This document shows, piece by piece, positions 24,027-56,490 of a stretch of DNA of 64,000 nt (position 1 is its first letter; the number at the start of each line of letters is the position of its first letter). The stretch covers positions 186,001 through 250,000 of IMG/VR virus record IMGVR_UViG_3300042502_001233. One strand, 5' to 3'. The notes under the pieces were generated by a model, which was not told the origin of the DNA, searched no databases, and was given only the letters and a program-made list of their open reading frames with translations. The position numbers and the translations under genes are program-made.

Positions 24027-24055
24027 AAAAAAAATAATTAATGTTAACGTATATA

Positions 24056-24312: not shown

Positions 24313-24423
24313 GTTCTTAAAACTATTATAACTATATGAACCTTTATTTTTTTTTTGTAATTTATAAAAAATCTTGGTTTTTCTGTTAAATCATAGTGTG
24401 TAGAAACATTCCTTACAGATAAA

Positions 24424-29391: not shown

Positions 29392-29511
29392 TTTATCTTT
29401 TTTTATATGTTTTTTTTTTATTAGATAAACAATAAGATGTTTTTCATTTGTTAATAAATATGTGTGGTTTTACCAAAAATCACTTTTTTGATAAAAAATT
29501 ATTATTTTTAT

Positions 29512-30237
29512 TTAGCCATTTAAAAAATTATCCAATTTATCATTCAGTGATTCAGTCATAAGTGGCTTCTTAATCTCGGTATTTTCCACATATGGTCGCG
29601 CTTCTTCATGATTTTTAAAAATCCAAGCGTCTGGTGTTGAAGGTGCTGTAACAACATCCCAACAAATAATTTCGAAGTCATCTTGTACAATTTGTTCTCC
29701 ATTTTTACCTTCTTTTAACGAACCAACTCCTCTGGAAGACACACCAATTTTTATTCTGTTTCTTAATAGATTAGCTACTTCATCACCTTTGGTAGATACA
29801 ATTCCCAAATTAATAAACCCAGGTGTCATTAGAATCTCCATCTTACCCATAAGTGTTTTACCTTCCCACCATGTTTCTACAATGTTGTGGGAAATTCTAT
29901 CACCAGCAATAATAGAAGACTCAGGGTGGTCTAATTCACCCACAGCTCTACGCTCACGTATGGCTTCTTGATATATTTGATTTTGTTTTTTTAAAATTGA
30001 TTCTGGGTAAATTCTACCGTTACGATTAAGTACATCGTATTTTTGTAGTACCACATAGACAATTAACGGTTCAACTATTGCTAGTTTGCTGCCTGTGTCT
30101 AATTTCTTTATTTCGTTTATGAATGCTTGGTTTCTTGGTTCATCAGGGTTGATGTACCCAGCGTCTTGTTCAATTAGACCACCCCAACCAGTTTCTCCAC
30201 GTTTTAATACTTTGAAGTCTTTATAATTTATATCCAT
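29512..30237 (-). CDS. gp21: Prohead maturation protease, T4 gp21-like
   Basis: NRNGRIYP, AVGELDHP, IGVSSRGVGS and WDVVTAPS. Confidence 0.95.
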   Translation of the reverse strand: MDINYKDFKVLKRGETGWGGLIEQDAGYINPDEPRNQAFINEIKKLDTGSKLAIVEPLIVYVVLQKYDVLNRNGRIYPESILKKQNQIYQEAIRERRAVGELDHPESSIIAGDRISHNIVETWWEGKTLMGKMEILMTPGFINLGIVSTKGDEVANLLRNRIKIGVSSRGVGSLKEGKNGEQIVQDDFEIICWDVVTAPSTPDAWIFKNHEEARPYVENTEIKKPLMTESLNDKLDNFLNG

Positions 30238-34595: not shown

Positions 34596-37595
34596 TTATC
34601 TTCTATTATTTAAGTTTCCAAACAGCCACATATGTTCACCTCTAGGGTCTTGAACATTTCTATATGCTCTATGTTCTGGATTTATTTTTTTTGTTACCTC
34701 ACCAGTTGCTGGGTTAGTTACTTTAGTTGTTGTTTGAGTATTTGATGAACCACCCAACCAACTATTTAAAATTGCTTTATTTTGTTTTTCTAATCTTTCT
34801 AAATTTTTAAACGAATGTTCAACAACCCACAAAGCCATACCCAACGACATAAGCAAATCATCATGATACCCTTCCATGTGGTCTGGTCTACCATTTTTAT
34901 AAACAAATGTTTTCATTTCTGATGTAAGTCTGCTTGAACGAATTTTAACACCGTTGGTTCTAATTTTATATTCTAAATTAGAAATCATAGGTAGACGAAC
35001 GTTGGTTGCGTGAAATCCTGGGATTTTGTTATCTTTGTTGAAATGTGTCAACTCTCTTTGTCTAGCAGAAAGAATTTTACCGTTGGCATTATCGTAATGC
35101 AAACGTTTGTAATCAAATTCTAACAATTTCAATACTGTAGACACACCCATACCACCAGTAACATCGACTACGGTATATGCTTTGTATAAATTACCGTATT
35201 CTTCGACGATTTGAGCCAATAAATCTGGTTGTATCTTACCTTGGTATTCCATCACCTCTTCCATTGTTGTAAAATCGATTACAACGATTGTAGAAGCATC
35301 TTCACCATCACCCCTAGATACGTCACAATTATGTGTTGTAATGTGATGACACATAAATGTATGTGTCTCACATTCAAAATTGTAAACGTTACCAGTATAT
35401 TTTGATTTATCTATATTTTTAATCCTAAAATAAATAAAATCTTTATTTTCATCAAAATGACATGATTTTATTGTTCTATCATTAATTACACTAAATTGGT
35501 TAAAATTAAACTTATTAAGTTTAGGGTCTAAAGCATCATTATTTAATAATTTTAGTAAATCTAAACTATCCTGATTAGCTAGTGTTAAATTATACGTTTC
35601 TTTTTGGTAAGTTATTTTACCACAAATTATTGATTCTTTAGCGTCTCTTAATTTATTCAAACACGATATAACCCCAAGTGAAAAAATGATATCTTGAATT
35701 GATTCTAATAATTCTAAATTAACACTAACAAAAGAAATTTTAGAATTAACTTTATTTTTTTTAATAGTTTTAACCCAACACCCATCACTGTCAAAATAAC
35801 CTTTTATTAATTCTATTTTATTTTCTTTAGAAATATATTTAACCCATTCAGATATTTTTTTACCATTAGAATACTGACCAAAATTTTCAATTAAAAAACC
35901 ATATAACTCTTTTGAATTAAAAACAATTTCATATGTTGTATCTTTTTCTATTATGGTTGGTTTTCTTTCAAATAATCGCCCAACTATTTCATATAATTTA
36001 TCAACATAGTACGTTTCATTTTTATTAAAACATACTGATATAGAATAATCATAGTTATTATAATGACCAACCCAACCATCTCCTAACCACATACCAATAA
36101 ACCACCAAAAATCTTTATCATTTAAAGGGTTTTTTAACCAAAAATCTTCTCTTCCATTAAAATTATCACCCCATACGTCTTTAATTTCTATTTCTTTTTT
36201 ATATATGTTAGGAACTTTAATCCAATCATCAATTTTAATATCACTAACTTTTTTGTATTGAAAATCTAAATCCCAATATCTTTCATTAAATTTATACTTT
36301 TTATGTTTTTTATTATAGTTTCTAATTAATTTAGAATCACTAACTAAAATAGGGTGTTCTTTAGTAAACTTGGTTTTTCTAAAGGTATTATCAACAGTAA
36401 TTTCATAGATATCTTCATTAACAACAGGGTAAATTTGTTTATTGATTATTTTAACGTAATCACCATTTTCAGATATTAAGTTATCATTACTTGAAACATC
36501 TTGAATATTAATCAAACCTCTATTAGTCAAGACTTTTTCGTCTGGCGGTAAACAACCCATAATGTATTGATGACCTTCTTGTGGTTCTTCCCAAATCCAA
36601 ATTTCATTCTCAGCACCCAAAGTATATTTAGGTTCCATAACGTTATTTTTATTTTGAAAATCAATATGTTCTTCAGCAATAACGTTACCACCAGACCCAA
36701 TGAACGATACATCTAACTCTTGCGCAATCATTTTGGCATCGTTGTTCATACCCAAACACATTTCTTCATACCATGATGATGTTGGTTTCCAACCATCATT
36801 TAACATTCTCTCATATGATTCATATGTGAATTCATATTCAATTTCTACATGGTCTTCTTTTAACCACCTAAGGTCTTTGTTGTAACGCAAATCCTCATAC
36901 CATTTCATTTCAATAATATTGAAGTTGTTCTTTTTCTTTTTGGCTTGGTCATAAGTTTTGTAGTATAACGCATCCATACCTTTTGGTGTTGAAATAAGAG
37001 TAGCTTTACCCCCAGTACCTAACGCTGTAAGAGCAGCACCAAATACTTCGGCACCATTGTCAATATACGCAGCCTCATCCATTACAAGATAAGTCGGTGT
37101 AAAACCACGCAATGCATCCTTAGATGTTGCAACCGCTTTAACACGGCTACCGTTAGGAAGTCTGATTTCTTTTTTAGAGTCAGTAATAAAGATTGATTTA
37201 GCTTCAGCCTTAGCGTTACCATAGTATTCGGCACCCCATACCCATCTAGGTAATTGACCCAAAAAATCTTTAATTTTTGCTAGGAACTCAAAAGCTAACT
37301 CTTGTTTGTTCGCGATGATAAGAACCGCCTCTGGGTTGTCCTCATCGGCCCACCCAACTTTTATTGCCATATATGCTGCTGTTGTAGTAGACACACCAGC
37401 TTGTCTAGGTTTAGTAACTAAATTAAACCTGTGTTTATCGTATGCTTGTATAATTTCCTTTTGTCTAGGAAATAGTTTGAAAGGTACAAAACCTTCTTGC
37501 GTTTTGTCAAATGTTTCCAAATACGTTTCAATGGCGTAAACTGGATTCATTAGACACTTTGTATATTCTTTAAATATTTCTTGTGTTGTCAACAT
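34596..37595 (-). CDS. terL: Terminase large subunit (gp17-like) with an in-frame intein
   Basis: KPRQAGVST (Walker A), LVMDEAAY (Walker B), G|CDVSRG nuclease motif and HDDLLM. Confidence 0.95.
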   Translation of the reverse strand: MLTTQEIFKEYTKCLMNPVYAIETYLETFDKTQEGFVPFKLFPRQKEIIQAYDKHRFNLVTKPRQAGVSTTTAAYMAIKVGWADEDNPEAVLIIANKQELAFEFLAKIKDFLGQLPRWVWGAEYYGNAKAEAKSIFITDSKKEIRLPNGSRVKAVATSKDALRGFTPTYLVMDEAAYIDNGAEVFGAALTALGTGGKATLISTPKGMDALYYKTYDQAKKKKNNFNIIEMKWYEDLRYNKDLRWLKEDHVEIEYEFTYESYERMLNDGWKPTSSWYEEMCLGMNNDAKMIAQELDVSFIGSGGNVIAEEHIDFQNKNNVMEPKYTLGAENEIWIWEEPQEGHQYIMGCLPPDEKVLTNRGLINIQDVSSNDNLISENGDYVKIINKQIYPVVNEDIYEITVDNTFRKTKFTKEHPILVSDSKLIRNYNKKHKKYKFNERYWDLDFQYKKVSDIKIDDWIKVPNIYKKEIEIKDVWGDNFNGREDFWLKNPLNDKDFWWFIGMWLGDGWVGHYNNYDYSISVCFNKNETYYVDKLYEIVGRLFERKPTIIEKDTTYEIVFNSKELYGFLIENFGQYSNGKKISEWVKYISKENKIELIKGYFDSDGCWVKTIKKNKVNSKISFVSVNLELLESIQDIIFSLGVISCLNKLRDAKESIICGKITYQKETYNLTLANQDSLDLLKLLNNDALDPKLNKFNFNQFSVINDRTIKSCHFDENKDFIYFRIKNIDKSKYTGNVYNFECETHTFMCHHITTHNCDVSRGDGEDASTIVVIDFTTMEEVMEYQGKIQPDLLAQIVEEYGNLYKAYTVVDVTGGMGVSTVLKLLEFDYKRLHYDNANGKILSARQRELTHFNKDNKIPGFHATNVRLPMISNLEYKIRTNGVKIRSSRLTSEMKTFVYKNGRPDHMEGYHDDLLMSLGMALWVVEHSFKNLERLEKQNKAILNSWLGGSSNTQTTTKVTNPATGEVTKKINPEHRAYRNVQDPRGEHMWLFGNLNNRR
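35328..36554 (-). mobile_element. Intein (409 aa) with a LAGLIDADG homing endonuclease
   Basis: Starts CLPPDEKVLT and ends THN followed by Cys+1; FIGMWLGDG and IKGYFDSDG LAGLIDADG blocks. Confidence 0.93.
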
Positions 37596-40011: not shown

Positions 40012-40408
40012 GTGTTTTAATATTATAATTCAATATTAGGTCTTTTTCATATAATTTTTCTTCAACGTCACCTATAGGTTCGCCAAATCTAAAACATAGC
40101 CTTGTCTCTGGGTAAGCATCGTATGCGTTTATATTTTCCCAAGCCAAAGCTATAACACCGTCAACAGCGTCCCAAACAGCAAACGTATCACTGTTTTGAA
40201 CAACATCCAAATTCAAATCTGATTCAAGTCTTCCAACTTTTTTTATGAATTTATCATGTGGTGCTTCTGGTCTCCCAGACGCTGGGAATGTATCCCATTC
40301 TTCACCGTCAATGTCTTTTGTGGTATCAGAAAAAATAAACTCGTAGATAAAGTTACCTTTGTAATCTTTACCTACTCTGTTTACATATATCAAATACATT
40401 TTATTCAT
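39998..40408 (-). CDS. Hypothetical protein
   Basis: 136-aa ORF. Confidence 0.7.
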   Translation of the reverse strand: MNKMYLIYVNRVGKDYKGNFIYEFIFSDTTKDIDGEEWDTFPASGRPEAPHDKFIKKVGRLESDLNLDVVQNSDTFAVWDAVDGVIALAWENINAYDAYPETRLCFRFGEPIGDVEEKLYEKDLILNYNIKTHEQK

Positions 40409-42204
40409 TATTTTTTAGCTTTTGGGTCTGGTTGAGTTTCAATTTCTGGCAAGAATGTTTTTTGTCTTCTTGTCGGTTGAACTGGTTGAGTTTCCGCTGG
40501 TTTTGTTTTTGGACCAGCTGGTAATGTTTGTGGTTCTGCGTTGTTCATATTATCTTGATTTAAACTTTCGTGTAATTTATTTAACAATGTTGTTTTGTCA
40601 AATATACTAAATTTATTTGGATTTATCAAGTTTTCTTCAACTATTTTAGAAACTGGTTTCTTAGACCACATTTTACATGACCAATATTTAGGTTTTGTTC
40701 TGTCTTTAGCTTGAGCACATTTATGTCTAGCTCTAAAAGATTTTCTTCTTTTTGGGTCATCTCTTTTAATTTCCATATTAGGGTCACCAAAATTAACTTT
40801 GACTATATTACCTTTTTTGTTTCTAACATAAACTTTAAATTTTTTAACGTCACCTTTCATTGGTTTACCTAATGGTTTCCCATCATATTTTCCTTCAGCC
40901 ACCATACGTTCAACATTACCATATTCATCTTCATAACCACCTTCAGTATCACCATCATAAGCGTTTAATGTGTTAGCTAGGAAATGGTAAACTTCTTCCA
41001 TATCATCATTAGCTGTTGCGATGTGGTCCAAGGCCCAACCGTGTCCGTTTGAAAGTATCCTATCTACCATAGAGTTATCCATTTCTAACAATTCACCAGA
41101 TGCATGTGCAATGGTTTTAAGGCTAGACCAAAACATATAATTGTTTGTTTCACCCATATCACCTTCCATCATGTTACCAGTTTCCATATTTCCTTCCAAG
41201 AAATGATAAACTTCTTCAATATCATCTTTTGATGTGATAACGTGTTCTAGAGCCCATTGATGACCATCAGCAATTAAATTATCAACACCTAACTTATCCA
41301 TATTCAACATTTCTATAGCGTCATCATGAATACCTTTAAGGTTTAACCAAAACATATAGTTGTTTGACTCACCTTCATTTTCTTCAGTTAATTTATCCCA
41401 TTGTTTTTTATCTGGATAGTCTTCATCGCCTGGTTTTGCTGGTGACTCACCTCTTTCTTTTTTAGCACGAATGTTGGCCCATAAACCTTCTGATTCTTCA
41501 TTAACTGGAACACAATTAGGGACTTCTTTACCGTTTTTTTCTTTCATCCCAACTTGTTTGTATCCTTTCCAACAAGCTTCAGTTAGTCTATTTTCTTCCA
41601 TAAACTCTGGACTATCTTCAGGTGCGAAAATGCTCATTCTTTTTGGGTTTTCCAAAAAGAAATCTTCATTCTCATAAATTTGGTAACTGTTTTCTCCAAG
41701 GTCTTCTTCATCTGATGAAAAGTCAAAATCATCATCACCAGCAGCCCCGTCATCGGGTCCACCTTGAGTATCGTCTCCAAAATCGGTGCTATCCTGATTA
41801 TCCGAACCAGAATCTTGTGCGTCATCTTTACCAGCGCTATTAATTTTCTTAATTATATCTTTTCTGTCGTTTTCATCCATTTCAGATGTGTGAGTAGCAG
41901 ATATCACCGAGTTTATTGCAAACTTCTCTAAATCAAAATCTGGTTGACCAGATTCATCGGAATAGCTTCTTAATGACTGACCTAATTTACCACTCAATTG
42001 TTCAATGAATTTCTTTGGGTCTGTTTCTTCATCAGCGTCAACACCCGCATCAAATGGTTCTTTGTCAAATGGTGCATCGTCTGCTGGAGCAGCTTCTTCC
42101 TCACCACCAAAATCACCAAAACCAGCGTCATCAGCTGGTTCTGTCATGGGTTCAGCTGGAGCGGGTGCAGGCGCAGCGGGTGCTGCTGGTGCAGGTTTAT
42201 CCAA
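40408..42204 (-). CDS. Large acidic multi-module protein, probably the -1 frameshift extension of the upstream ORF
   Basis: The only start is a TTG with no obvious initiation context, while the frame stays open up to the A10 run (KKTLNEAKKYTLKLDKPAP). Contains a duplicated NNYMFW...GHxWALxH module. Confidence 0.7.
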   Translation of the reverse strand: MDKPAPAAPAAPAPAPAEPMTEPADDAGFGDFGGEEEAAPADDAPFDKEPFDAGVDADEETDPKKFIEQLSGKLGQSLRSYSDESGQPDFDLEKFAINSVISATHTSEMDENDRKDIIKKINSAGKDDAQDSGSDNQDSTDFGDDTQGGPDDGAAGDDDFDFSSDEEDLGENSYQIYENEDFFLENPKRMSIFAPEDSPEFMEENRLTEACWKGYKQVGMKEKNGKEVPNCVPVNEESEGLWANIRAKKERGESPAKPGDEDYPDKKQWDKLTEENEGESNNYMFWLNLKGIHDDAIEMLNMDKLGVDNLIADGHQWALEHVITSKDDIEEVYHFLEGNMETGNMMEGDMGETNNYMFWSSLKTIAHASGELLEMDNSMVDRILSNGHGWALDHIATANDDMEEVYHFLANTLNAYDGDTEGGYEDEYGNVERMVAEGKYDGKPLGKPMKGDVKKFKVYVRNKKGNIVKVNFGDPNMEIKRDDPKRRKSFRARHKCAQAKDRTKPKYWSCKMWSKKPVSKIVEENLINPNKFSIFDKTTLLNKLHESLNQDNMNNAEPQTLPAGPKTKPAETQPVQPTRRQKTFLPEIETQPDPKAKK

Positions 42205-42230
42205 CTTTAATGTATATTTTTTAGCTTCGT

Positions 42231-43466
42231 TTAAAGTTTTTTTTTTAAATCAGCTATAGCTTCTTTTATTTCTTCAAGAGTTAATGCTTCATCCATAGCG
42301 TCATTTTTAGTCGCACCAGCGATTTTATCAGCGTATGTGATTTTATCTTTAGGTTCAGCCAAAGCAGCAAATTCTTTATCTTCATCTGACATTTCTTCAT
42401 TAATATCTGGATATTGTTTGTTGAAATAATCTCTAGCTTTATCCATACCAGTAGACAATTTTTGAGAAATAACATTTTTAAAATCTCTACCAGCATCACC
42501 TAATAATTGAAGTAATTCAGCAGCAGACATATTGTCTAATCTATTCATCAATTCATCATTCGACATGTTATCATCATTTACCATGTTACCTTCTCCGTAC
42601 ATGTCTTCTTCCATGTAACTTTCGTCATACATGTCTTCTTCCATATAACTTTCGTCATTTCTTAATTTAGAAAAATCATCCCCATCAAGTTTGCCGTTAC
42701 GATTCATATCAAGTTTATATTGGTTTCCACGCAATTCTTCATCAACTGGTATCTCCAATTCGCTTGGTGGGTTTGGTATTTGGTCTTCAGCATCGGTTCT
42801 ATAAAAATCATTACCGTTATCTTCTATCATTTTGTCAATGTATTGTTCTTCTTCAGACATTTCCATATCATCACCAAACATACCTTCATCAACAAATCCG
42901 TTACCTGACATTTCAGCAAATCCAGCCCAACCTTCATCAATTTTTTTAACTTTTTCAAATTCTTTTGCTGTTTTACCTTTAGCAACATTGTCACCAAATC
43001 CGTCTTCCTCAGAACCTTCTTTAGCTTCTTGTTTTAACTCAGAACCTTTTTTGTCTACAATGTGTTTAGATGCAAAGTTTTCTTCGTTCAACAAATCATC
43101 GTCTTCAAATACGTTGATGTTACTATCTGTACCATAAGCTTCTGCCAAAGATTTAAACGTTAAGTTTAAATGTTTAGTTGCTTTAGCGTATGATGGATAA
43201 GCTTCTTTCTTTTTGTTTTGCAAACCACCAATGTATTTAAAATCTTCAGTTACAAGTTTTGAAGTTTTATCTGATACTTTGATGTAATATTCGTGATTTT
43301 CTCTAACAATAGCATAAGCTTTACCGTCAGGACCCATTTTAGTCAATTCAATAACTGAACGAGAAACATTTTCGTTGATAGGTGTAATACCCATAAGTTG
43401 CTTCATACGTTCATTGATTTCGTTTCCTTTTAAACCAACTGGGTTAATTTTAAAATCTTTTTTCAT
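42231..43466 (-). CDS. Acidic hypothetical protein ending at a slippery site
   Basis: Ends GAT TTA AAA AAA AAA CTT TAA; internal DESYMEEDMY duplication. Confidence 0.75.
   Translation of the reverse strand: MKKDFKINPVGLKGNEINERMKQLMGITPINENVSRSVIELTKMGPDGKAYAIVRENHEYYIKVSDKTSKLVTEDFKYIGGLQNKKKEAYPSYAKATKHLNLTFKSLAEAYGTDSNINVFEDDDLLNEENFASKHIVDKKGSELKQEAKEGSEEDGFGDNVAKGKTAKEFEKVKKIDEGWAGFAEMSGNGFVDEGMFGDDMEMSEEEQYIDKMIEDNGNDFYRTDAEDQIPNPPSELEIPVDEELRGNQYKLDMNRNGKLDGDDFSKLRNDESYMEEDMYDESYMEEDMYGEGNMVNDDNMSNDELMNRLDNMSAAELLQLLGDAGRDFKNVISQKLSTGMDKARDYFNKQYPDINEEMSDEDKEFAALAEPKDKITYADKIAGATKNDAMDEALTLEEIKEAIADLKKKL
42237..42246 (-). other. A10 putative -1 frameshift/transcriptional slippage site
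   Basis: T TTA AAA and A AAA AAA heptamers two codons before the stop; the -1 frame is open for about 610 codons. Confidence 0.6.
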
Positions 43467-44114: not shown

Positions 44115-44562
44115 TTAGTTGCTTAAAGGTGCTTTAATTGTTGAGTGTGATTGGTAATTTTCTAGTTCAAATTGAGCTATACTCAGGTAATCTATGTCAA
44201 TTCCTGTTATAGGGCAAGGGTTGAATTTAAGTGTTGGTAACGGAAAAGGTTCTCTCGTTCTTTCAGGAACACTTCCTTGGTGTCTACCAGATAAAAATAT
44301 ATGTTTATGTGAATCAGATGTTAACTTATTATATGTATCCATCGCATATTCATTTTCTTTATTACCCCATAATTCAAATCTTTCATTTAATATTAATTCT
44401 CTACCAATCTGTTCTTTTGCTTGTTCAATATGGTTTGAATATAAATGAACATCACCCAAATTCCCAATCAATTGGTCAGGAACCATATTAACTGATTTTG
44501 CTATTATTTCTAATAACAATCCATAAGAAGCAATGTTAAATGGTAACCCTAAAAACGTATCT
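44115..44562 (-). CDS. thyA: Thymidylate synthase C-terminal chain, exon 2
   Basis: After splicing it reads (V)DTFLGLPFNIASYG...GDVHLYSNH...IKAPLSN. Confidence 0.92.
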
Positions 44563-45577
44563 CATTATATTCATATAAGGTCGTTAATCTTACACAGTTC
44601 TCTTATGAACTTCTTTATGTTTCCATAAAGATTAGACTATATCACAACCCAAATATTTGGGTTTTCATCTTTTCCACTCACTTGAGTGTACTCCCTGTCG
44701 GGATAGTCGTTAGGCATTTATTTATATTGATAATCTGGGTAATTAATACTTTTAATTCTGTTTAAAATTGTTGCTGGTTTAACATTGAAAACTCTAGCAC
44801 ATTCTGATAAAGATTTAAACTCTTCATCGTTAACGATTACTATTTTTTCTTGGTTACCATTATATTTCCCAGTTCTTTTCTCACTTAAAATTTTTTTGGT
44901 TTCTTGTGAATGTTGTTTATTAAAAAATGGGTTATTTTCACCACTTCTATCTAAACATTTTATACATTTTTTTGTCACACTATCTATTCTAGAACCACAT
45001 TCACAAAAAGTTTTACCACCTTTCCAATTAGGATTATCACTTTTAAATCTTGGTTCTTGTTTAGGTGCCTTTCTAAGGTTTTCAATCGCTTTTTTGATTA
45101 TATTAACTTTATTTGGGTGGTTAGATATTAAATCACCACCACTAGCACTTTTCGAAACATTGTATAGTTCATTAAAAGATATTGAATCTAATAATTCTTG
45201 TTCTTTATCTTTATAATTTTCACATTCTAAAATAATTTCTAATTTAAAATTATCTTCACCGTATTTATTAAACGCTCTTTGTAAATGAATACAATGGTGT
45301 TTATTTTTTCTAAGTTCGTTAAAATGTTTTAAAGTTCTTTTTTTTATTTCTTTAGTACTACCTAAATAGTATTTGTTCGTTTCTAAATTAATAATTTTAT
45401 AAATGTATCCCATAATGTTTTTATTATAAATATGTAGATAAATTAAAAAGTAACCCTAAAACGGTATCATCATAAATTTTAGCACGGGATTGTCTACAAC
45501 ATAACTTGTTTAGGTGTTCCCCGTTTAGATGAATTTTTCGAAACATATTACTATGTTAAGCCGCAGATTTTTCGTTT
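44563..45577 (-). mobile_element. Group I self-splicing intron (1015 nt) in thyA
   Basis: The 5' exon ends CCGU and pairs with IGS GCGG (U-G wobble). IGS AUCU pairs with 3' exon AGAU (P10). P3 UUCAUCU/AGAUGAA, R element AACGACUA, S element GAUAUAGUC and a terminal G are all present. Splicing restores RSVDTFLGLPFN in frame. Confidence 0.92.
44718..45413 (-). CDS. Intron-encoded GIY-YIG endonuclease (I-TevI-like architecture)
   Basis: YIYKIINLETNKYYLGST, a CECG...CIKC zinc finger, NUMOD3-like NPFFNKQHSQETK and a C-terminal HTH; has its own ATATTTAT motif at 45426-45433. Confidence 0.9.
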   Translation of the reverse strand: MGYIYKIINLETNKYYLGSTKEIKKRTLKHFNELRKNKHHCIHLQRAFNKYGEDNFKLEIILECENYKDKEQELLDSISFNELYNVSKSASGGDLISNHPNKVNIIKKAIENLRKAPKQEPRFKSDNPNWKGGKTFCECGSRIDSVTKKCIKCLDRSGENNPFFNKQHSQETKKILSEKRTGKYNGNQEKIVIVNDEEFKSLSECARVFNVKPATILNRIKSINYPDYQYK

Positions 45578-45999
45578 ACGGAACGTTGACTCCACATTAA
45601 AGAGATTGTTCTGGTTGGAATCCCAGTTAAATCATTACCTTCCATATTTACTGAATCGTAACCATATTTTTTCCAATATAAATCTTCTCTTTCTTTTTGA
45701 CTCAACTCTCTTGTATAAACTTGAAAATCTGTGTGACAAGGTGGTAGCACCATATCTTTAAGTTTATGTGGTTGCCAAGCAGAAACTCTAAGTCTTCTAG
45801 AATCTGGGTTATTTTTTAACCCATCTATTAATTCAGTTATTTGGTCAACACCTTCAAAGTTACGCCAACCAGAACCATAAATAGGTCCTAAATCACCAAA
45901 ACGTTTAGAAAAGTCCTCATCGTTTTTAATTCGTTCAATAAATTCTTCCTGACTCAACGGTCTACCAGATTCATGTAAATCTTCTTTTTTTACTTTCAT
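45578..45999 (-). CDS. thyA: Thymidylate synthase C-terminal chain, exon 1
   Basis: [20 protein letters not shown] (catalytic Cys) and WSQRSV. Confidence 0.9.
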
Positions 46000-46331
46000 T
46001 CTTTTTTATTTTTATTTATGTTATTTAATTTCTCACATTCTTTTAGATACGCTTTATAAGCATCTCCATTCCAAATGTTACAGTCATTCTTTAAAAGATA
46101 TTCTATTGAAGTATCACCTCGTAAGAACCAAAGAAGTTCTGTTACGATTGTTTTAAATGGCATCTTTTTGGTTGTAAGTAAAGGAAACCCATCTTTCATA
46201 TCGTGACGTATTTGTCTTCCGAATACTGAGATTGTTCCTGTACCAGTACGGTCAGATTTAGGGGTGCCGTTATCAAGAATGTCTTGAAGAAGTTCCGTGT
46301 AATCTTTGTCTAACTTGTTTATAAATCCCAT
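45996..46331 (-). CDS. thyA: Thymidylate synthase N-terminal fragment (separate ORF)
   Basis: [23 protein letters not shown] and NIW; ends in a TGA that overlaps the ATG of the next part (ATGA). Confidence 0.9.
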
Positions 46332-48259: not shown

Positions 48260-50068
48260 ATGAACAGAGAAATTTATCCTAAAGTTAAAATAATTATGAA
48301 TCAAGCTATCAAAGAAGCTAAAAGTTTCGATGATACTAAAATAAGACCTGAACATATTATCCTATCAATGATGATTGATAATGATAATGAATGTACTAGG
48401 CTTTTAAATCAAATGAAAGTAGATACCTTTGACTTATATGATAAAGTCTCTGATTATTTAAGACAAAGCGATTTAACCCCAAGAGTTGCAAACACAAGTA
48501 GAAAAACGTTACCATTTTCAGATGAAACAAAAGCAATTATCAAAAGCCTTGATAAAGAATGTGAAAAGTTAAATCATAATATGATTGATACAACACATGT
48601 TATGCTAGGTATTTTAGCAGCAAAGCTACCGATAAATGAATTGTTATCTAAAAGTGGTATAACGTATAACCGTTTTAAAAAAACATTAAAAGATATGGAA
48701 AATTACGATGTAAAAAACAGTGCATTTAGTGGTGATGACCACGAAGAAAACGACAGTTTTAGAAAAAAACCTAACAGACCAAACGACTCTAAATCAAAAA
48801 CACCAGTGTTGGATAACTTCTGTAGAGACGTATCCAAAGCTGTAGAAAAAGGAGAAATAGACCCAGTGGTTGGTCGTGAAGTTGAAATCAAAAGAGTTTC
48901 ACAAATACTTTCACGTAGAAAGAAAAATAACCCAGTACTTATCGGAGAACCAGGCGTTGGTAAAACAGCCATCGTAGAAGGACTCGCACAGCTTATCTAT
49001 GAAGGTAACGCACCTAGAACACTTACTGGTAAAAAAATATTTACCTTGGATTTGGCTAGTATCGTTGCTGGTACAAAATATAGAGGTCAGTTTGAAGAAC
49101 GAATGAAAGCCGTGTTGGAAGAATGTAAAGCCAACCCAGATATTGTGTTATTTATTGACGAGTTACACACAATTGTTGGTGCTGGGAATTCCTCAGGTTC
49201 GTTAGATGCTAGTAACATCTTTAAACCAGCTTTGGCCAGAGGTGAAATACAAATCATCGGAGCAACAACACTAGATGAATACCGCGAAAACATTGAAAAA
49301 GATGGTGCGCTTACTAGACGTTTCCAACAAGTTCTTGTTGAGGAACCTACTCTAGAGCAAACCAAAACTATTTTGATGAATATCAAAGAAAAATACGAAA
49401 AACATCACAGAGTAAAATATACTGAAGAAGCTATTGACGAGTGTGTTAAACTATCTTCTAGATACATAATGGATAGAGCTATGCCAGACAAAGCCATCGA
49501 TGTATTGGATGAAGCTGGCGCCACCACAAACGTTAGTGTTGAAAAACCAGAAAATGTCAAGACTTTAGAATCTCAAATTAGTGAAATCCAAGTTCAAAAA
49601 AATGAAGTTGTTAAAAAACAACAATACGAAGAGGCGGCCAAGTTAAGAGATAAAGAAAAAGAATTAGATGACAAATTAAAAGAAGCCAACGCTAAATGGC
49701 AAGAAGAATTAGAATCTAATATTACGGAAGTTGGTGTTGACTTGATTTCAGAAGTTGTTTCTATGATGACTGGAATCCCACTTAATAAAATTTCAACACA
49801 AGAAACCAAAAAATTACTTAACATGGACAAAGCTCTTATGGGTAAAGTTATCGGTCAAGACGTAGCTGTATCTAAAGTAGTTAAAGCCATCAAACGTAAC
49901 CGTATCGGTATCAAAGATAAAAACAAACCAGTTGGTTCGTTCATCTTCTTAGGTCCTACTGGAGTTGGTAAATGTATTTGTGGTGATACAGAAATAATAG
50001 TCAGAAATAAAGTAACTGGTGAGATTAAAATTATTAACATAAAAAATATCGTACCCGACACCAATTAG
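48260..50068 (+). CDS. clpC: ClpC-type AAA+ unfoldase, N-terminal half fused to a split-intein N fragment
   Basis: Clp N-domain, [15 protein letters not shown], a UVR-like M-domain ([11 protein letters not shown]), then FLGPTGVGK|CICGDT... Confidence 0.93.
49973..50065 (+). mobile_element. Split intein N fragment (31 aa)
   Basis: [31 protein letters not shown], an intein block A beginning with Cys1 right after the Walker A lysine. Confidence 0.85.
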
Positions 50069-50114
50069 TCCGAACTTTTTAAAACTTCATGATATTTATT
50101 ATAAAATAGATATT

Positions 50115-51335
50115 ATGAAAATAAAAACGAGTAAAGGTATTAAAGAAATAAATGAAGTTTTTACAGATTTGGAAAGTTTAAAAAACCAAGTCTTAAAATT
50201 AGATAAAAACATACGCTACGATAACGAAACAATTAAAAAAGAAATAGAATCACTGATGGTTAAATTAAAAGAACAAGAAGGTGTTGTTTCATTATCGTTG
50301 ATGCGTGGTTGGTTGGTGAAAAATTACGGTTTTAAAACTAAGAAATGGGGTAATATAGAGTATTTCATTGAACGTGGTTGGAATGATAAAGACGCTTTGA
50401 TTGAGTTGGATAAACGTAATAAAGAATTAAAACAAAGGAACCGTTTATGTGAAGAGTATTGGATTAATAAAGGTTACACTAAAGAAGAAGCTATTAACGA
50501 AATTTCTAAACAACAACAAAAATCATCTAAATGTGTTAAAACTTATCATGGTAAATCTAAAAAAATGTTAGCTGATAAAGGTTACACCGAAGAAGAAATA
50601 AAACGTATTTGTTTAACACCAACAAATTCTGAATTCTGGGTTAATAAGGGGTATTCTGAAAATGAGGCAAAAGATATTATTAGTAAAAACCAAACTGAAG
50701 CTGCGAAACAAGTTGATTTTGAAAAAAGACTAATACCATCAAATATTGAGTATTGGGTTGAGAAAGGTTTTAATTATCAACAAGCTAAACTAAAAGTAAC
50801 TGAACAACAAACAACTTTTAGTTTAGCTATATGTATTCAAAAATATGGTGAAGAAGAAGGTAAAAAAAGATTTACTGAAAGACAAAATAAATGGTTAAAT
50901 TCATTATTAACTAATGGTAATATGGTTATTGGATATTCTAAAATATCTCAAGATTTGTTCTATAAAATTTTAGAAATATATGATATTAGTGATAAAGATA
51001 AGGTTTATTTCGCAACACACAATAGTGAGTTCAAATTAGGTAAAAAAGAAGGTGGTGTTTGGTTATATGATTTTACCGATATTAAAAATAAAAAAATAAT
51101 TGAGTTTCATGGTGATATGTTCCATGGAAACCCAAATAAATATAAAGCTGGTGATTATCCACACCCATTTAGGAAAAATATAACCGCACAAGAAATGTGG
51201 AATAAGGATAAAAGTAAATTAGATGTTGCCTTAGAAGAAGGTTTTGATGTGTTGGTTATATGGGATTCAGAATATAGATGGGGAAACAAACAAGAAATAA
51301 TAAATAAATGTGTTTCTTTTCTAAATAAAAAGTAG
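50115..51335 (+). CDS. Vsr/DUF559-like (PD-(D/E)xK) putative homing endonuclease with repeated (Y/F)WxxKGY...EEA modules
   Basis: C-terminal YDF...IIEFHGDMFHG...DKSK...EEGFDVLVIWDSE; located between the intein halves. Confidence 0.75.
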   Translation: MKIKTSKGIKEINEVFTDLESLKNQVLKLDKNIRYDNETIKKEIESLMVKLKEQEGVVSLSLMRGWLVKNYGFKTKKWGNIEYFIERGWNDKDALIELDKRNKELKQRNRLCEEYWINKGYTKEEAINEISKQQQKSSKCVKTYHGKSKKMLADKGYTEEEIKRICLTPTNSEFWVNKGYSENEAKDIISKNQTEAAKQVDFEKRLIPSNIEYWVEKGFNYQQAKLKVTEQQTTFSLAICIQKYGEEEGKKRFTERQNKWLNSLLTNGNMVIGYSKISQDLFYKILEIYDISDKDKVYFATHNSEFKLGKKEGGVWLYDFTDIKNKKIIEFHGDMFHGNPNKYKAGDYPHPFRKNITAQEMWNKDKSKLDVALEEGFDVLVIWDSEYRWGNKQEIINKCVSFLNKK

Positions 51336-51346
51336 TATATTTGTAT

Positions 51347-51724
51347 ATGAAAATAAAATTTAATATAAAACTATATAAGATAAAAATTATACTGTATATT
51401 TCAGATGATTTAATTAGTGTGGCTGACAAGATTAAGAAAAACCACAAAGTAAAACTATATAAATTATCGAATAAAGAAATAAAAAAAATAGATGGTTGTG
51501 TTATTGGTCAATTTATGGAAAATGATAATTTACTTTATGTTTTGATTCAATCTAAAAATGGTAAGGTATGTATTAACACACTAACACACGAAATTTATCA
51601 TTTAACTAGTAAAATAATGAAACATAATGATTTTGATTTTTATCATTCTGACGAACCATTTGCAAGATTAAATGCTTTTTTAAATAAAAAAATTATTAAA
51701 AATAAAAAAATTAAATTAATATGA
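51347..51724 (+). CDS. Small HExxH (zincin-like) protein nested in the fractured clpC
   Basis: NTLTHEIYHLT...DEPFARL; TATATTTG promoter element at 51336-51343. Confidence 0.55.
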   Translation: MKIKFNIKLYKIKIILYISDDLISVADKIKKNHKVKLYKLSNKEIKKIDGCVIGQFMENDNLLYVLIQSKNGKVCINTLTHEIYHLTSKIMKHNDFDFYHSDEPFARLNAFLNKKIIKNKKIKLI

Positions 51725-51924
51725 ATGAAATTAATGCTGGTTGTTATAAATTAACAACAACTAAAAAAACCACAAATGGTTTGAAAACACAAGAATATAT
51801 TGTTTTAATTAGTGGTTATAAACCCTTCTTAAAGATGGAATCGTTCTGGTCAATAAAAGATAATTGTTTTGTTAGTTCAGATATTCTCAGAGCTGTAGAA
51901 ACTAAATACGAAAAAATTAATTAA
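51721..51924 (+). CDS. Small hypothetical protein nested in the fractured clpC
   Basis: 67-aa ORF overlapping the upstream stop. Confidence 0.55.
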   Translation: MNEINAGCYKLTTTKKTTNGLKTQEYIVLISGYKPFLKMESFWSIKDNCFVSSDILRAVETKYEKIN

Positions 51925-51931
51925 TAAAAAT

Positions 51932-53593
51932 ATGGAAGATTTAAAAAAATTCATGGATGACACTGTTAAATGTGAAATTCTAAAATACGCTAGTTATGAC
52001 GATAAAAATGGTGGTATTGCTAAACCAGAATATAAATTTACTGTTCTAATCAGAACGCTAAATTTTGAAAATAAAACTAATAATGATATAAAATTAATTA
52101 TTGATGAGGCTGGTTTGTTATTAAATTACGATAATTGTCATGTTTCAATGTTTTCTATCGGTAAACTAAACGGAGAAGTTTTTTCAGTTAATGAAACTGA
52201 TGATGACTTTGCTGTCTTAGATAAACATTTAAGTGATGGTAAAACAATTGTTTTATATTCTGCTAAAATTGATACTGGAAAAGTGTATTACAGATATTCT
52301 TTGGTTAAAGATAAACCATTAAATAGAATGGAAGAAATTAAAAAAAGAGTTGATAAATCAGATAATGTTTTATTATTTGATAAACACGAATTAGAGTCTT
52401 TAAAAAAGATTACTAAAACAACCAAAATATCTGATTATGAAGTTTTAACTGATGATGGTTTTGTTGACATAGAGGCATTACACGAAACAATACCGTATGA
52501 AGTATATCATCTAAAATTAAAAGACGGTAAAGAACTTAAATGTGCTGATAATCATATTGTATTCGTTAGTGAATACCATGAAACTACTTTTGAACCAATT
52601 GGTTTAACCGAAATATTTGTTAAAAATTTAGAAATAGGTTCGTTTGTTATGGTGTCTGATGATAACGGTAATCTAACAGAATCTGAAGTTGTTGAACTTA
52701 CGAATTTAGGTTATGAAGAAGTAATGTATGACCTTGAACTAAAAGAAGGTTCCAATAGACGATATTATACCAATGGTATTTTATCACATAATACGATGTT
52801 GGCTAAATTGTTAGCAGAAGAAGTATTTGGTGATGCTGATTCATTGTTTAGAATCGATATGTCTGAGTATATGGAGAAATTCTCTGTGTCGAGATTGGTT
52901 GGTCCACCTCCTGGATATGTTGGGTATGAACAAGGTGGTCAATTGACTGAGAAAGTTCGTAGAAAACCACACTGTGTTGTTTTGTTTGATGAGATTGAAA
53001 AAGCTCATGAAGATGTATTCAACTTGTTATTACAAATGCTAGATGAAGGTCATTTGACTGACGGATTAGGTCGTAAAGTTAATTTCAAAAATGCTCTTAT
53101 TATCATGACATCTAACATTGGTGTTAAAGAAGCAAACTCATTTGGTAAGACAATGGGTCTTGAGACACCAAACGGAATGTTAAATGAAGAAAACAAAGCG
53201 CGCGCTATTATCGAAAAAGCTCTTAAAAAGAAATTCAAACCAGAGTTCTTAAACCGTATCGATGAAGCAATTATCTTCAACAGCCTTAAACGCGAAGACA
53301 TCCACGAAATCATCAACGTTGAGTTTGAAAAACTTAGAAAAAGAGTTGTTGAAATGGGTTACGATTTAACCATTGAACAAGCAGCGTTAGATTTCTTGGC
53401 AGAACATGGATACGATGAAGAATACGGAGCTAGACCTCTTACCAGAACACTTCAACATTATGTAGAAGATACGGTGGCTGATGAAATTTTGGCTGACCAT
53501 ATTGTCGAAGGACAAACCATCAATATCGTTTATGATAAAGATAACGATACATTGATTGTAAAACAACCAAAAACACCCAAACCAAAAAAATAA
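51932..53593 (+). CDS. clpC: Split-intein C fragment fused to the C-terminal half of ClpC
   Basis: ...YYTNGILSHN|TMLAKLL..., RIDMSEYMEK, GPPPGYVGYEQGGQLTE, LFDEIEKAH, TSNIG, PEFLNRID and YGARPL. Confidence 0.93.
   Translation: MEDLKKFMDDTVKCEILKYASYDDKNGGIAKPEYKFTVLIRTLNFENKTNNDIKLIIDEAGLLLNYDNCHVSMFSIGKLNGEVFSVNETDDDFAVLDKHLSDGKTIVLYSAKIDTGKVYYRYSLVKDKPLNRMEEIKKRVDKSDNVLLFDKHELESLKKITKTTKISDYEVLTDDGFVDIEALHETIPYEVYHLKLKDGKELKCADNHIVFVSEYHETTFEPIGLTEIFVKNLEIGSFVMVSDDNGNLTESEVVELTNLGYEEVMYDLELKEGSNRRYYTNGILSHNTMLAKLLAEEVFGDADSLFRIDMSEYMEKFSVSRLVGPPPGYVGYEQGGQLTEKVRRKPHCVVLFDEIEKAHEDVFNLLLQMLDEGHLTDGLGRKVNFKNALIIMTSNIGVKEANSFGKTMGLETPNGMLNEENKARAIIEKALKKKFKPEFLNRIDEAIIFNSLKREDIHEIINVEFEKLRKRVVEMGYDLTIEQAALDFLAEHGYDEEYGARPLTRTLQHYVEDTVADEILADHIVEGQTINIVYDKDNDTLIVKQPKTPKPKK
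52328..52792 (+). mobile_element. Split intein C fragment (about 155 aa from the internal Met133)
   Basis: VLTDDGF, ELKCADNHIVF (block B, with a CxxH variant of TxxH), MYDLEL (block F) and SHN|T (block G). Confidence 0.85.
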
Positions 53594-55350: not shown

Positions 55351-55779
55351 CTATAATGGGTCATCTTTTTTACCAATATATTCATAACTAAAACACAACC
55401 TTTTATTATCGTAAACATGGTCTTTGTATGTGTTGGCAGAACTTACATCTTTTCTTAATTTTTTATTTTTGCTGGTAGGTTTCCAAAGTGGTGAATTCTC
55501 CCAGAAAGCACCCAATCTAGGGTGAGCAGTCCTTGAAAAATATCTGTAACCTTGGTCAATATGATGCTGTGCGATAGCAGTAGAAAATCTAACACCAATA
55601 CCCATCCCTTGAAAATCTGGTAATACAACATTCCTGTGTCCTCTCCATGCATTTTTTAAAGTACCGCTAGGCATTGATATACTAGCGAAAAAACTAACTA
55701 CTTGGTCACCCCAAACACCAATGTAGCATCTAGAAGCTTTGTTTACGTTTCCGTCTAAATAGTGATGGTCTTTAAACAT
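55351..55779 (-). CDS. GNAT acetyltransferase domain (frame open upstream to the T9 run at 55842)
   Basis: FKDHHYL, RNVVLPDFQGMGIG (acetyl-CoA binding) and RTAHP. Confidence 0.8.
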   Translation of the reverse strand: MFKDHHYLDGNVNKASRCYIGVWGDQVVSFFASISMPSGTLKNAWRGHRNVVLPDFQGMGIGVRFSTAIAQHHIDQGYRYFSRTAHPRLGAFWENSPLWKPTSKNKKLRKDVSSANTYKDHVYDNKRLCFSYEYIGKKDDPL

Positions 55780-56444
55780 TCGCCAACTATCATTTGTTGT
55801 GCGATATATTTTGAGAGTGATTTCTGGTCGGACAAAAAAAAACCGTGAAGTAATTCACCTGTATCTGTATTGATAACCCAATCTGGTTCTAACCAATCTA
55901 TAATATCAGAATGACATGTGGATATAACCACATTCTCCAAACCGTTTTTATCTATATATCTTGACAAAGCAACACTGGCCGCTTTAGCCACGTTTCTATC
56001 AACCACACTGGTGTATTCATCAATAACACAATTGGATTTTAATTTACGAGCTAAATCAGCTCTAAACTTCTCACCGTTAGACAACACATGGTAAGGTTTA
56101 TACCAAGAAGGTATTGTGTTTAAACCAACAGCGGTTAGTTTATTTATACCATCATCTGGTGATTCAAAATGCGATACTATGGATTTGTTTGGGTCCCATG
56201 TTGGTGTTTCTTCAACACCAAAATTTTTAAGAAGTGTTGATTTACCAGAACCACTGGAACCAACGATTACACCCAACTTGAATTTTGTTGGTAATTTGGT
56301 TGGAACTTTCCACGGGTAAAATTTTGAGATTCCATCGAATTTACAATCAAACGCTGTTTCACTGGCTTCAATATATTCGTCACGGTCCACACTTGAAGTA
56401 AGAGGTGTGGTTTCTCTTTTTAATTTTTGTATTAATTTTTCCAT
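55755..56444 (-). CDS. ABC-type ATPase domain, joined to GNAT by a -1 frameshift
   Basis: GSSGSGKST, LSNGEKFRA, IDEYTS and STCH; the tail after GFF looks like out-of-frame translation. Confidence 0.85.
   Translation of the reverse strand: MEKLIQKLKRETTPLTSSVDRDEYIEASETAFDCKFDGISKFYPWKVPTKLPTKFKLGVIVGSSGSGKSTLLKNFGVEETPTWDPNKSIVSHFESPDDGINKLTAVGLNTIPSWYKPYHVLSNGEKFRADLARKLKSNCVIDEYTSVVDRNVAKAASVALSRYIDKNGLENVVISTCHSDIIDWLEPDWVINTDTGELLHGFFLSDQKSLSKYIAQQMIVGECLKTITI
55834..55842 (-). other. U9 putative -1 frameshift/slippage site
   Basis: CAC GGT TTT TTT TTG; the -1 frame reads ...VRPEITLKIYRTTNDSWRMFKDHHYL. Confidence 0.65.
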
Positions 56445-56490
56445 GATTTGAAACATTTATAAATAAATATCTCGTTATCATAAAAAAATA

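Follow-up and report, generated by a model that had tools for sequence, protein, structure and literature searches.

The locus lies on the minus strand of a 64,000-nt stretch (hereafter the window; positions 186,001 to 250,000 of IMG/VR record IMGVR_UViG_3300042502_001233) of the 362-kb genome of an uncultured lake phage. Two open reading frames, referred to here as orfA and orfB, are located beside the head genes, between thyA/orf80 and orf136-orf345-orf424-TerL. orfA (43466..42231, 411 aa, ATG start) consists of a conserved N-terminal domain, an acidic variable linker and a C-terminal helix, and ends GCT GAT TTA AAA AAA AAA CTT TAA (KKKL*). The run of exactly ten A's (A10; T10 on the plus strand) is at 42237-42246 of the window (genome position 228237). 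The −1 frame reads TGA TTT AAA AAA AAA ACT TTA AAC GAA GCT, giving FKKKTLNEAKKYTLKLDKPAP..., and stays open from 42249 to 40408 (orfB, 613 codons from stop to stop). The ORF listing starts this frame at TTG 42204 (598 aa), whereas its first ATG is 29 codons behind the run. The only room for a change of frame is therefore the 22 nt of 42231-42252, from the TGA of the −1 frame (42250-42252) to the TAA of the 0 frame (42231-42233). A −1 shift, or one extra A in the mRNA, gives orfA residues 1–410 plus orfB residues 5–613, which is 1019 aa. The observation made in the earlier note, that orfA ends on an A10 run from which a −1 shift would lead into orfB with a product of about 1019 aa, was confirmed, including the length of the product.

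A survey of homopolymer runs of the genome showed that such an arrangement is more than chance. The genome has 15 A10/T10 runs and none longer; the others sit directly in front of ATG starts or at ATG AAA AAA AAA, and were rejected as recoding sites because an ATG follows at once. Only this A10 and one T9 (55834-55842, also in the window) join two frames of 100 or more codons where the first ATG lies far behind the run. Since a run of A11 in the reads had been named beforehand as the sign of an assembly error, contigs from four independent lake-water metagenome runs of different studies were aligned across the run, and all of them bridged it with 0 other letters and 0 gaps, indicating that it is not an assembly error, although these are contigs and not raw reads, so that minor length variants could not be seen.

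The run is conserved among relatives. Over 54 distinct junctions (39–99% identity), all have A9–A11 at the same −1 junction (A10 in 47, A9 in 5 and A11 in 2), and nine A columns are invariant in the alignment, whereas the codon holding the first A (TTA, GTA, CCA, TCA) and the 3′ context (CTT, GTC, GTA, GCA) vary. The shift window is likewise short in these relatives, with the run 0–36 nt behind the −1-frame stop and the 0-frame stop 4–27 nt behind the run. On the other hand, such runs are avoided elsewhere in these genes. In the genome 89% of Lys codons are AAA, but only 2 of 42 KKK triplets are all-AAA against 70% expected; in the 54 loci, all-AAA was found in 2 of 110 internal KKK triplets, against 56 at ORF ends, where the joint lies (overall, AAA is 84–89% of Lys codons, yet only about 2–5% of internal KKK triplets are all-AAA). 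Only 6 A9 runs lie deep in ORFs in 335 kb of flanks.

orfA forms one family with the upstream ORFs of all relatives (E 1e-23 to 1e-271). Its N-terminal domain (43092..43466, aa 1–125) showed 68% mean column identity, with a nearly invariant [LIV]-x-E at aa 30–32 (INE), and was predicted by AF2 to have an alpha/beta fold (pLDDT 74). A structure search with this model gave no PDB match, and the BFVD hits were uncharacterised viral homologues. A profile search found 967 representatives (clusters at 50% identity) at E<=1e-3 among 1.84 billion. Pfam, NCBIfam and PHROGs gave no function for orfA and only unknown-function PHROGs for orfB, with no hits to tail assembly chaperones, and the ESM Atlas showed only unnamed viral clusters. 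No near-identical DNA was found in cultivated phages, and tblastn of orfA and of two single-ORF relatives against 50,697 phage records found nothing. The two halves were searched separately, and the genome shows no other genetic code. Rfam gave no hit on the whole window at gathering thresholds.

orfB (40408..42249) has 276 relatives in IMG/VR, and 2800 proteins reached E<=1e-5 in a word search. Directly after KKK-T, its frame encodes L-N-E (42226..42234), an instance of a [LIV]-x-E motif present in 54/54 relatives, 0–2 residues before a conserved K[YF]K[LI]K, although the linker to the run varies from 3 to 25 residues; the motif is also present in single-ORF relatives. The conserved part of orfB begins with K-Y-T-L-K (42205..42219), whose Leu codon, the TTG taken as a start by ORF callers, varies among TTG, CTG, TTA and CTA in relatives. 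In relatives the first ATG lies 6–132 codons behind the run; orfB has no conserved start codon. Further downstream is a twofold helical repeat (NNYMFW...GHxWAxxH...EEVYHFL, two copies; 40951..41376, aa 292–433 of the stop-to-stop orfB translation), possibly a DinB/YfiT-like four-helix bundle with conserved His residues: AF2 pLDDT was about 85 in these segments, the His residues are invariant in the alignment, and the top 12 VIA-align hits were nearly all DinB/YfiT-like with about 130 residues aligned, but at Z 9.7–6.9, where values below about 13 are not decisive for helical bundles, and with no Pfam match. A small basic Cys-containing domain (KKFKVYV...RRKSFRARHKC...KYWSCKMW; 40666..40902, aa 450–528) matches phrog_7595 and, weakly, DUF5754. 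It is shared with many marine and freshwater phages, and tblastn found it in pelagiphages, roseophages and Flavobacterium phage immuto and Melnitz, always annotated hypothetical; orfB shares only such small domains with isolates.

The same phage encodes a prohead protease of the T4 gp21 family (29512..30237, minus strand; Peptidase_S77, PF03420, E 5.4e-26, 91.7 bits against a cutoff of 27; phrog_207) in a T4-like order of portal, 3 small ORFs, protease, 449-aa acidic ORF and major capsid protein. This makes it a candidate enzyme for cutting at the [LIV]-x-E behind the joint.

More distant relatives encode both halves as one ORF. About 25 of the 150 best orfA-family representatives carry orfB-like sequence in the same ORF, at the same genomic position. 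The earlier note had held that relatives with a single uninterrupted ORF would refute recoding; this criterion needs correcting, since such relatives show that the fusion is the real protein and do not refute recoding, while all 54 close relatives keep the split plus the run. Moreover, seven single-ORF lineages keep pure A9–A11 runs in frame at the same KKK-S-L-x-E-x-KYKLK place, some with two runs per gene, and a sister lineage has the split with A10, whereas run-less single-ORF lineages write poly-Lys as an AAG/AAA mix. On the tree of the N-terminal domain, split and in-frame states interleave inside a 100/100 clade with at least 4 changes, where the split state of 107 representatives was read from protein C-termini only. 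The second gene in the window has the same architecture at its T9 run, which is conserved in 21 distinct relatives; in one lineage the run is replaced by GGA AAT TTT TCA, a classical A_AAU_UUU ribosomal heptamer, and two relatives have T10 and are in frame.

We also looked for elements that would stimulate a ribosomal frameshift. Two A_AAA_AAA heptamers lie in register in TTA AAA AAA AAA, but no hairpin or pseudoknot was found at the canonical spacing of 5–9 nt downstream, and the first ~30 nt after the run are A-rich and unpaired. Hairpins of different sequence start right after the KYKLK codons in many lineages; however, they lie 29–50 nt from the run (98 nt in one lineage) and the next 50-nt window is about as structured (mean z −1.9 against −1.6; Wilcoxon p 0.45), so we do not count them as a stimulator. 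No consistent hairpin lies upstream of the run either, apart from GGTCTTTCAGACC in one lineage. An SD-like GAAGG/GAGGG 3–8 nt upstream of the run occurs in many lineages, but it encodes a conserved Glu-Gly and is absent in the lineage of the window.

Taken together, orfA and orfB are very probably one gene with a programmed slip site. In this view, standard decoding of the A10 run ends 2 codons later and gives the 411-aa protein, whereas in a fraction of expression events one extra A is read into the message, or the ribosome steps back one base on the run, and the frame continues into orfB to give the fusion of about 1019 aa. Since some single-ORF relatives keep the A10 in frame, the selected element is the run itself and not the DNA frame; in those sister lineages the long form would be standard and slippage would give the short form. 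What the analysis itself establishes is the anatomy of the 22-nt shift window without a start codon, the identity of four assemblies across the run, its conservation against a background that avoids such runs, the conservation of the −1 frame as protein right up to the run with synonymous variation, the existence of single-ORF relatives with and without the run, the interleaving of frame states, and the second gene with T9. The slippage event and the production of the fusion are inferred from sequence, because no RNA run holding this sequence was found, so that neither the slipped mRNA nor the fusion protein has been seen. It is likewise only inferred that the gene belongs to the head/packaging module, that the N-terminal domain may target the protein to the prohead, and that the T4-type protease may cut after the [LIV]-x-E just behind the joint and free the orfB part, in a Gag-Pol-like or T4 CTS-like cargo arrangement. 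T4 gp21 and its giant-phage homologues cut after Glu following a short motif, with determinants at CTS residues 8 and 10 (PMC9026906), and giant phages remove propeptides of more than 100 residues (PMC5694885), but [LI]-x-E is frequent in these Glu-rich proteins (1–4 per 100 residues), so its conservation is necessary but not sufficient, and no homologue is known from any virion proteome. Also against the cleavage and cargo idea, no cultivated phage has the gene and the N-terminal domain has no known fold. The interpretation in the earlier note is therefore partly supported: the single expression unit joined at A10, the absence of a conserved start for orfB, the short and long products and the conservation of the L-N-E site in a phage with a cognate protease are all supported, whereas the fixed ratio of products that it proposed is not shown and the choice it left between ribosome and polymerase is not settled.

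As to the agent of the slip, we lean to RNA polymerase, though with only about an even chance, and a purely ribosomal −1 shift on A_AAA_AAA, by tandem Lys-tRNA slippage or sliding on the poly-A tract of an unedited mRNA, remains a tentative main alternative; both may contribute. The conserved length of 9–11 is that at which selection against A/T runs sets in in many bacteria and at which IS elements fuse ORFs by transcriptional slippage (PMC1088944), both A and T runs are used, the frame flips while the run is kept, and no structure lies at the canonical spacing; in addition, a heptamer would suffice for the ribosome, and the wobble base of the preceding codon is A in 49 of 54 relatives. On the other hand, ribosomes slide on iterated AAA codons (PMC4363877), the A_AAU_UUU heptamer at the second joint speaks against polymerase as the sole agent, and the register xxA AAA AAA AAA is kept in 52 of 54 relatives, which fits tandem tRNA slippage though it may be plain descent.

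Other explanations appear much less likely. DNA-level phase variation, in which subpopulations of phage genomes would carry A10 (short form) or A11/A8 (fused form), could draw on the hypermutability of long homopolymers (PMC1088944), on the different frame states of related lineages and on the two in-frame T10 relatives at the second joint, but four assemblies and 47 of 54 relatives have exactly A10, and in-frame lineages also have A10, so their frame differs through changes next to the run and not in it; we consider it improbable, bearing in mind that contigs drop rare variants. That orfB is a separate gene, translated from TTG 42204 or by termination-reinitiation behind an A-rich leader, is very unlikely. 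Other A10 runs of the genome do lie just upstream of ATG starts and gene callers do start orfB homologues at the Leu codons of KYKLKL, but this Leu codon is not a conserved start, amino-acid conservation ([LIV]-x-E, K) lies upstream of it, the first ATG is more than 100 codons behind the run in about half of the relatives, within conserved sequence, and single-ORF relatives show the two parts as one polypeptide. Homopolymers are a classic source of indel errors, but such an assembly or sequencing error, a caveat raised in the earlier note, or a recent frameshift mutation in a decaying gene is effectively refuted by the four identical assemblies and by the same split in 54 distinct relatives down to 39% identity with both halves under purifying selection.

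A broader reading, which we regard as possible but unlikely, is that a large clade of uncultured aquatic T4-like phages uses homopolymer runs as general, evolvable leaky joints between protein modules. A9–A11 runs sit at module boundaries of the orfA-orfB family, sometimes two per gene, and are kept whether the next module is in frame or in the −1 frame; polymerase slippage would then set the proportions of a nested set of N-terminally identical proteins, a one-base change next to the run would invert the default form, and the same device (T9) would join an ATPase and a GNAT domain in the second gene. The short form of the head-module gene would be an assembly or targeting protein and the long form the same protein carrying cargo (DinB-like and small basic domains) released by the prohead protease inside the capsid, which would be a Gag-Pol-like loading system in a bacteriophage. 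Irrespective of this reading, gene callers annotate these loci as two unrelated hypothetical proteins and start orfB at arbitrary Leu codons, so the inferred real product of about 1000 aa is missing from protein databases. The family offers a tractable system to ask how polymerase or ribosome slippage sets protein ratios in phage assembly and whether phages load capsid cargo by a Gag-Pol-like route.

Programmed slippage on homopolymers is known from dnaX, IS elements and a few secretion-system genes, and the textbook cases in phages are tail chaperones and T7 gene 10. What stands out here is the deep conservation of the joint in a very large, entirely uncharacterised family next to the head genes (967 clusters for the N-terminal domain and thousands of orfB relatives), the coexistence of lineages with the split, with an in-frame run and with no run, and the use of the same device by a second gene of the genome. 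The tail assembly chaperone G/GT frameshift, with which the earlier note had compared the joint, is an analogy of outcome only: it too is a morphogenesis-region gene giving a short and a C-terminally extended product through a −1 shift near the end of the first ORF, but the present gene is upstream of terminase and head genes and not between the tail tube and tape measure genes, there is no sequence or fold relation, the slip site is a 9–11 nt homopolymer rather than a heptamer such as G_GGA_AAG, and the extension of 609 aa is longer than the first ORF. In T4 capsid targeting sequences and giant-phage propeptides removed by the gp21-family protease, as well as in retroviral Gag-Pol, the parallels are the protease encoded nearby, the [LIV]-x-E exactly between the N-terminal and cargo parts, acidic low-complexity proteins like head-internal ones, and the logic of loading a minority cargo by frameshift fusion to an abundant assembly protein; however, the presence of orfA or orfB in the virion is hypothetical, T4 CTS are 10–20 residues (PMC5694885) whereas the part in front of the site here is 410 residues, no T4 internal protein is made by recoding, and cleavage is inferred from a short, common motif. 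In Shigella mxiE/spa13 and Citrobacter tssM, the longer functional product likewise needs polymerase slippage on a homopolymer inside the gene (PMC5009743, PMC4256274), but those are single-lineage cases in bacteria, whereas here the site is conserved across a large viral family. Closer are the orfA-orfB transposase fusions of IS elements made by transcriptional slippage (PMC1088944), in which two partly overlapping ORFs in a −1 relation are joined at a conserved run of about 9 A's whose length wobbles by one, against genome-wide avoidance of such runs in coding DNA; the present gene differs in that it is not a mobile element, its products are acidic modular proteins, and the run is also kept when the ORFs are in frame. 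Also closer is dnaX tau/gamma, made by −1 ribosomal frameshift at A_AAA_AAG in E. coli and by transcriptional slippage on A9 in Thermus thermophilus, where one gene gives a long and a short protein with a common N-terminus, out-of-frame stops lie close behind the run, and different lineages reach the same pair of products by different routes (PMC5009743). The protein is unrelated, the gene is a phage gene next to the head module, the SD-plus-hairpin stimulator of E. coli dnaX is absent, some relatives have two runs in one gene, and the inferred polarity in the window is reversed, with the short form standard and the long form from slippage, whereas the in-frame A10 lineages have exactly the layout of dnaX, in which the long form is standard and the short form comes from slippage.

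The 362,018-bp IMG/VR virus genome, of which bases 186001–250000 are considered here, has 31% G+C and is found in lake-water metagenomes. On its minus strand the region holds a T4-like head and packaging block, in the following order: thymidylate synthase in pieces with a GIY-YIG endonuclease, orf80, orfA/orfB, orf136, orf345 and orf424, the large terminase with a LAGLIDADG intein, the portal, three small ORFs, a Peptidase_S77 (T4 gp21-type) prohead protease (29512–30237), a 449-aa very acidic ORF in the scaffold position and a gp23-type major capsid protein. The thymidylate synthase (44115–46331) is in three ORF pieces (45996–46331, 45556–45999 and 44115–44519), and a GIY-YIG / I-TevI-like endonuclease gene (44718–45413) lies between the last two, which suggests an intron or homing element, although Rfam found no group I intron at gathering score; relatives L084, L089 and L090 (loci whose orfA/orfB genes are described below) have an intact thyA. 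The large terminase gene (34596–37595, 999 aa) carries an intein with a LAGLIDADG homing endonuclease, for which the Pfam hits were Intein_splicing, LAGLIDADG_3 and Terminase_6N. The major capsid protein (26119–28008) is 629 aa in length, and only its residues ~360–620 align to T4-like capsid proteins, leaving an N-terminal part of about 350 residues unexplained; an L-T-E sits at residues 58–60. On the plus strand (48260–53593), a ClpB-like ATP-dependent protease/chaperone (phrog_4871) is split into two ORFs, of which 48260–50068 covers profile positions 5–510 and 51932–53593 covers 510–758. Two unrelated ORFs lie between them and the second piece has 287 extra N-terminal residues, which may reflect an inserted element or an intein.

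The earlier note described a run of ten A's at which a -1 shift, or one extra A introduced by RNA polymerase slippage, would join two large ORFs into a protein of about 1019 aa, and this observation was confirmed base for base. orfA (43466..42231 on the minus strand, 411 aa) ends GAT TTA AAA AAA AAA CTT TAA, and the ten A's occupy 42237–42246. The -1 frame has a TGA at 42250–42252 and then runs open for 613 codons to 40408 (orfB), so that any change of frame must happen within 22 nt, most of which are filled by the run. The TTG start assigned by the ORF caller (42204) lies 15 codons into this frame, and the first ATG is 29 codons behind the run. The predicted trans-frame product is 410 + 609 = 1019 aa. 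The note had named an assembly error as a condition that would refute the reading; however, Logan contigs of four lake metagenome runs from four different studies crossed the run with no mismatch and no gap, indicating that it is not an artefact, although rare length variants would not show in contigs.

In order to evaluate the conservation of the joint, IMG/VR was scanned with orfB, by which 276 relatives were found. In every one of the 54 distinct loci that include upstream DNA (39–99% amino-acid identity), an upstream ORF of 184–570 codons in the 0 frame meets the orfB frame in the -1 relation at a run of A's (A10 in 47, A9 in 5 and A11 in 2 loci). The upstream ORFs are all one family, with a strongly conserved N-terminal domain of about 125 residues, a variable acidic linker and a C-terminal helix before KKK. 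Around the run the sequence is free to vary: the codon that supplies the first A is TTA, GTA, CCA or TCA, the bases after the run are CTT, GTC, GTA, GCA and others, and the 0-frame stop lies 4–27 nt behind the run, whereas nine A columns are the only long invariant stretch in the alignment. Gene order (orf80, orfA/B, orf136, orf345, orf424, TerL) is the same in all loci.

The run is an exception to a rule of these genomes. In the genome under study 89% of Lys codons are AAA, so 70% of KKK triplets should be AAA AAA AAA, but only 2 of 42 are, and one of those is this site. In the 54 related loci, 2 of 110 internal KKK triplets are all-AAA, the usual spelling being AAA AAG AAA, whereas 56 all-AAA triplets sit at ORF ends, where the joint lies. 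Only six A9 runs lie deep inside ORFs in 335 kb of flanking DNA. The genome has 15 A10/T10 runs and none of 11 or more, and most of them (for instance among those at 29410–29419, 24025–24034 and 24347–24356) lie immediately 5' of ATG start codons as A-rich leaders, for example in front of the 449-aa scaffold-like gene. Inside its genes, runs are avoided by spelling KKK as AAA AAG AAA. Avoidance of A/T runs from about nine bases, and their retention where ORFs are to be fused, is the signature that Baranov et al. used to find transcriptional slippage sites (PMC1088944).

orfB is not a gene of its own. Amino-acid conservation in the -1 frame begins at the run, and after KKK and a linker of 3–25 residues comes [LIV]-x-E, then K[YF]K[LI]K within 0–2 residues, in 54 of 54 relatives. 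The Leu codon that callers take as a start is TTG, CTG, TTA or CTA, and in about half of the relatives the first ATG lies more than 100 codons inside conserved sequence. None of the 120 best orfB homologues in the protein collection contains the orfA domain, meaning that gene callers split the gene everywhere.

A profile of the orfA N-domain was then searched against 1.84 billion representatives, and 967 proteins were found at E<=1e-3. Of the best 150, 106 end in KKK within the last 16 residues, which is the split layout, and about 25 carry orfB-like sequence in the same ORF. DNA of the latter showed two further states. In distant lineages (L091, L092 and L094) the N-domain is followed directly by [LIV]-x-E and KYKLK in a single ORF, in which there is no A run longer than 8 and poly-Lys is written as an AAG/AAA mix. 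In L084, L085, L086, L089 and L090, on the other hand, the single ORF still has a pure A9–A11 run, in frame, at the same place (for example TCT AAA AAA AAA AGT CTA AGC GAG ACT AAG TAT AAA), and stops in both other frames follow within 0–8 codons. L086 and L090 have a second run about 160 codons upstream, while L087 and L088 have an in-frame A10 at the first joint and a second A9/A10 run further down, which in L088 leads into a -1 frame of 181 codons. A sister lineage of L084 (L096) has the split layout, again with A10. On an N-domain tree, split and in-frame rows interleave within a clade supported 100/100 and at least four changes are needed, although this tree rests on only 135 columns, has a midpoint root and a bootstrap that had not settled, and the split state was read from protein ends. 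The single-ORF genes lie at the same genomic position. From these results we conclude that the orfA-orfB fusion is a genuine protein, and that selection acts on the run itself, whichever frame follows.

We also found a second joint of this type. On the minus strand (55351–56456) a T9 run (55834–55842) joins a 233-aa P-loop ATPase-like ORF to a -1 frame encoding a GNAT-like part, and the two halves match profile positions 11–194 and 200–353 of a single family, phrog_11143. Twenty-one distinct relatives keep T9 and the -1 relation, two have T10 and are in frame, one lineage has GGA AAT TTT TCA (A_AAU_UUU) instead of the run, and distant relatives are single ORFs without a run. In the whole genome only these two homopolymer sites join long frames without a nearby ATG.

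Regarding the mechanism, RNA polymerase slippage (one extra A) and a ribosomal -1 shift both give the same protein, ...DLKKKTLNE..., and no RNA run contains the sequence. We favour the polymerase, at about even likelihood, because the conserved feature is a length of 9–11 rather than a heptamer, because a second gene uses a T run, because the frame state flips while the run stays, as is expected if transcripts are a mixture of n-1, n and n+1, and because there is no structure at the spacing that a ribosomal stimulator needs. Hairpins of quite different sequence do start right after the KYKLK codons in many lineages (42154–42206 on the minus strand in the genome under study, where the fold has z -3.8), for example GCUGGUUCU/AGAACCAGC, AGAUGC/GCAUCU against AGACGC/GCGUCU, and GGGGCU/AGCCCC; however, they lie 29–50 nt behind the run and the next 50 nt are about as structured. 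On the other hand, the register xxA AAA AAA AAA is nearly constant, ribosomes do slide on AAA repeats (PMC4363877), and at the T9 joint one lineage has the classical A_AAU_UUU heptamer in place of the run, so that a ribosomal shift remains a possible but less likely alternative, and only a small share is left for both agents together or for DNA-level variation.

The function of the two halves can only be inferred, since none of the libraries searched named either of them. The orfA N-domain is predicted to fold with moderate confidence (pLDDT 74) but matches nothing solved. orfB is modular, with a Pro/Ala-rich and acidic start, a conserved helical segment (DPKKFIEQL...), a CWKGY... motif, a twofold helical repeat whose model resembles DinB/YfiT metal-binding bundles (Z 9.7–6.9, which is not decisive), a small basic Cys-containing domain that is widespread in aquatic phages, and a conserved C-terminal P...RR...P.PKA tail that closes the protein. 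In several relatives (L033–L035, L064 and L071–L074) the last ~65 residues of orfB lie 0.8–2.7 kb downstream of the rest, suggesting an insertion (intron, intein or homing gene) between the small basic domain and the C-terminal tail. The fixed place of the gene beside the packaging and head genes, the gp21-type protease, the invariant [LIV]-x-E at the joint (L-N-E here) and the nearly invariant one at residues 30–32 of orfA (I-N-E) suggest that the protein enters the prohead and is cut there. This is a hypothesis without support from virion data, and the motif is short and common in these Glu-rich proteins. The proposed arrangement would resemble T4 internal proteins with their targeting peptides and giant-phage proteins with long propeptides (PMC9026906, PMC5694885).

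Taken together, the sequence comparisons show the anatomy of the joint, the reality and conservation of the run and the existence of single-ORF relatives, whereas the slipping agent, prohead entry and cleavage are our inferences. The interpretation in the earlier note is supported in part: recoding as such has strong comparative support, but the evidence does not decide between the two agents that the note offered. Slippage on homopolymers is already known from other systems; what is new here is the family, its size, its place in a phage head module, the coexistence of split, in-frame and run-less states, and a second such joint in the same genome.
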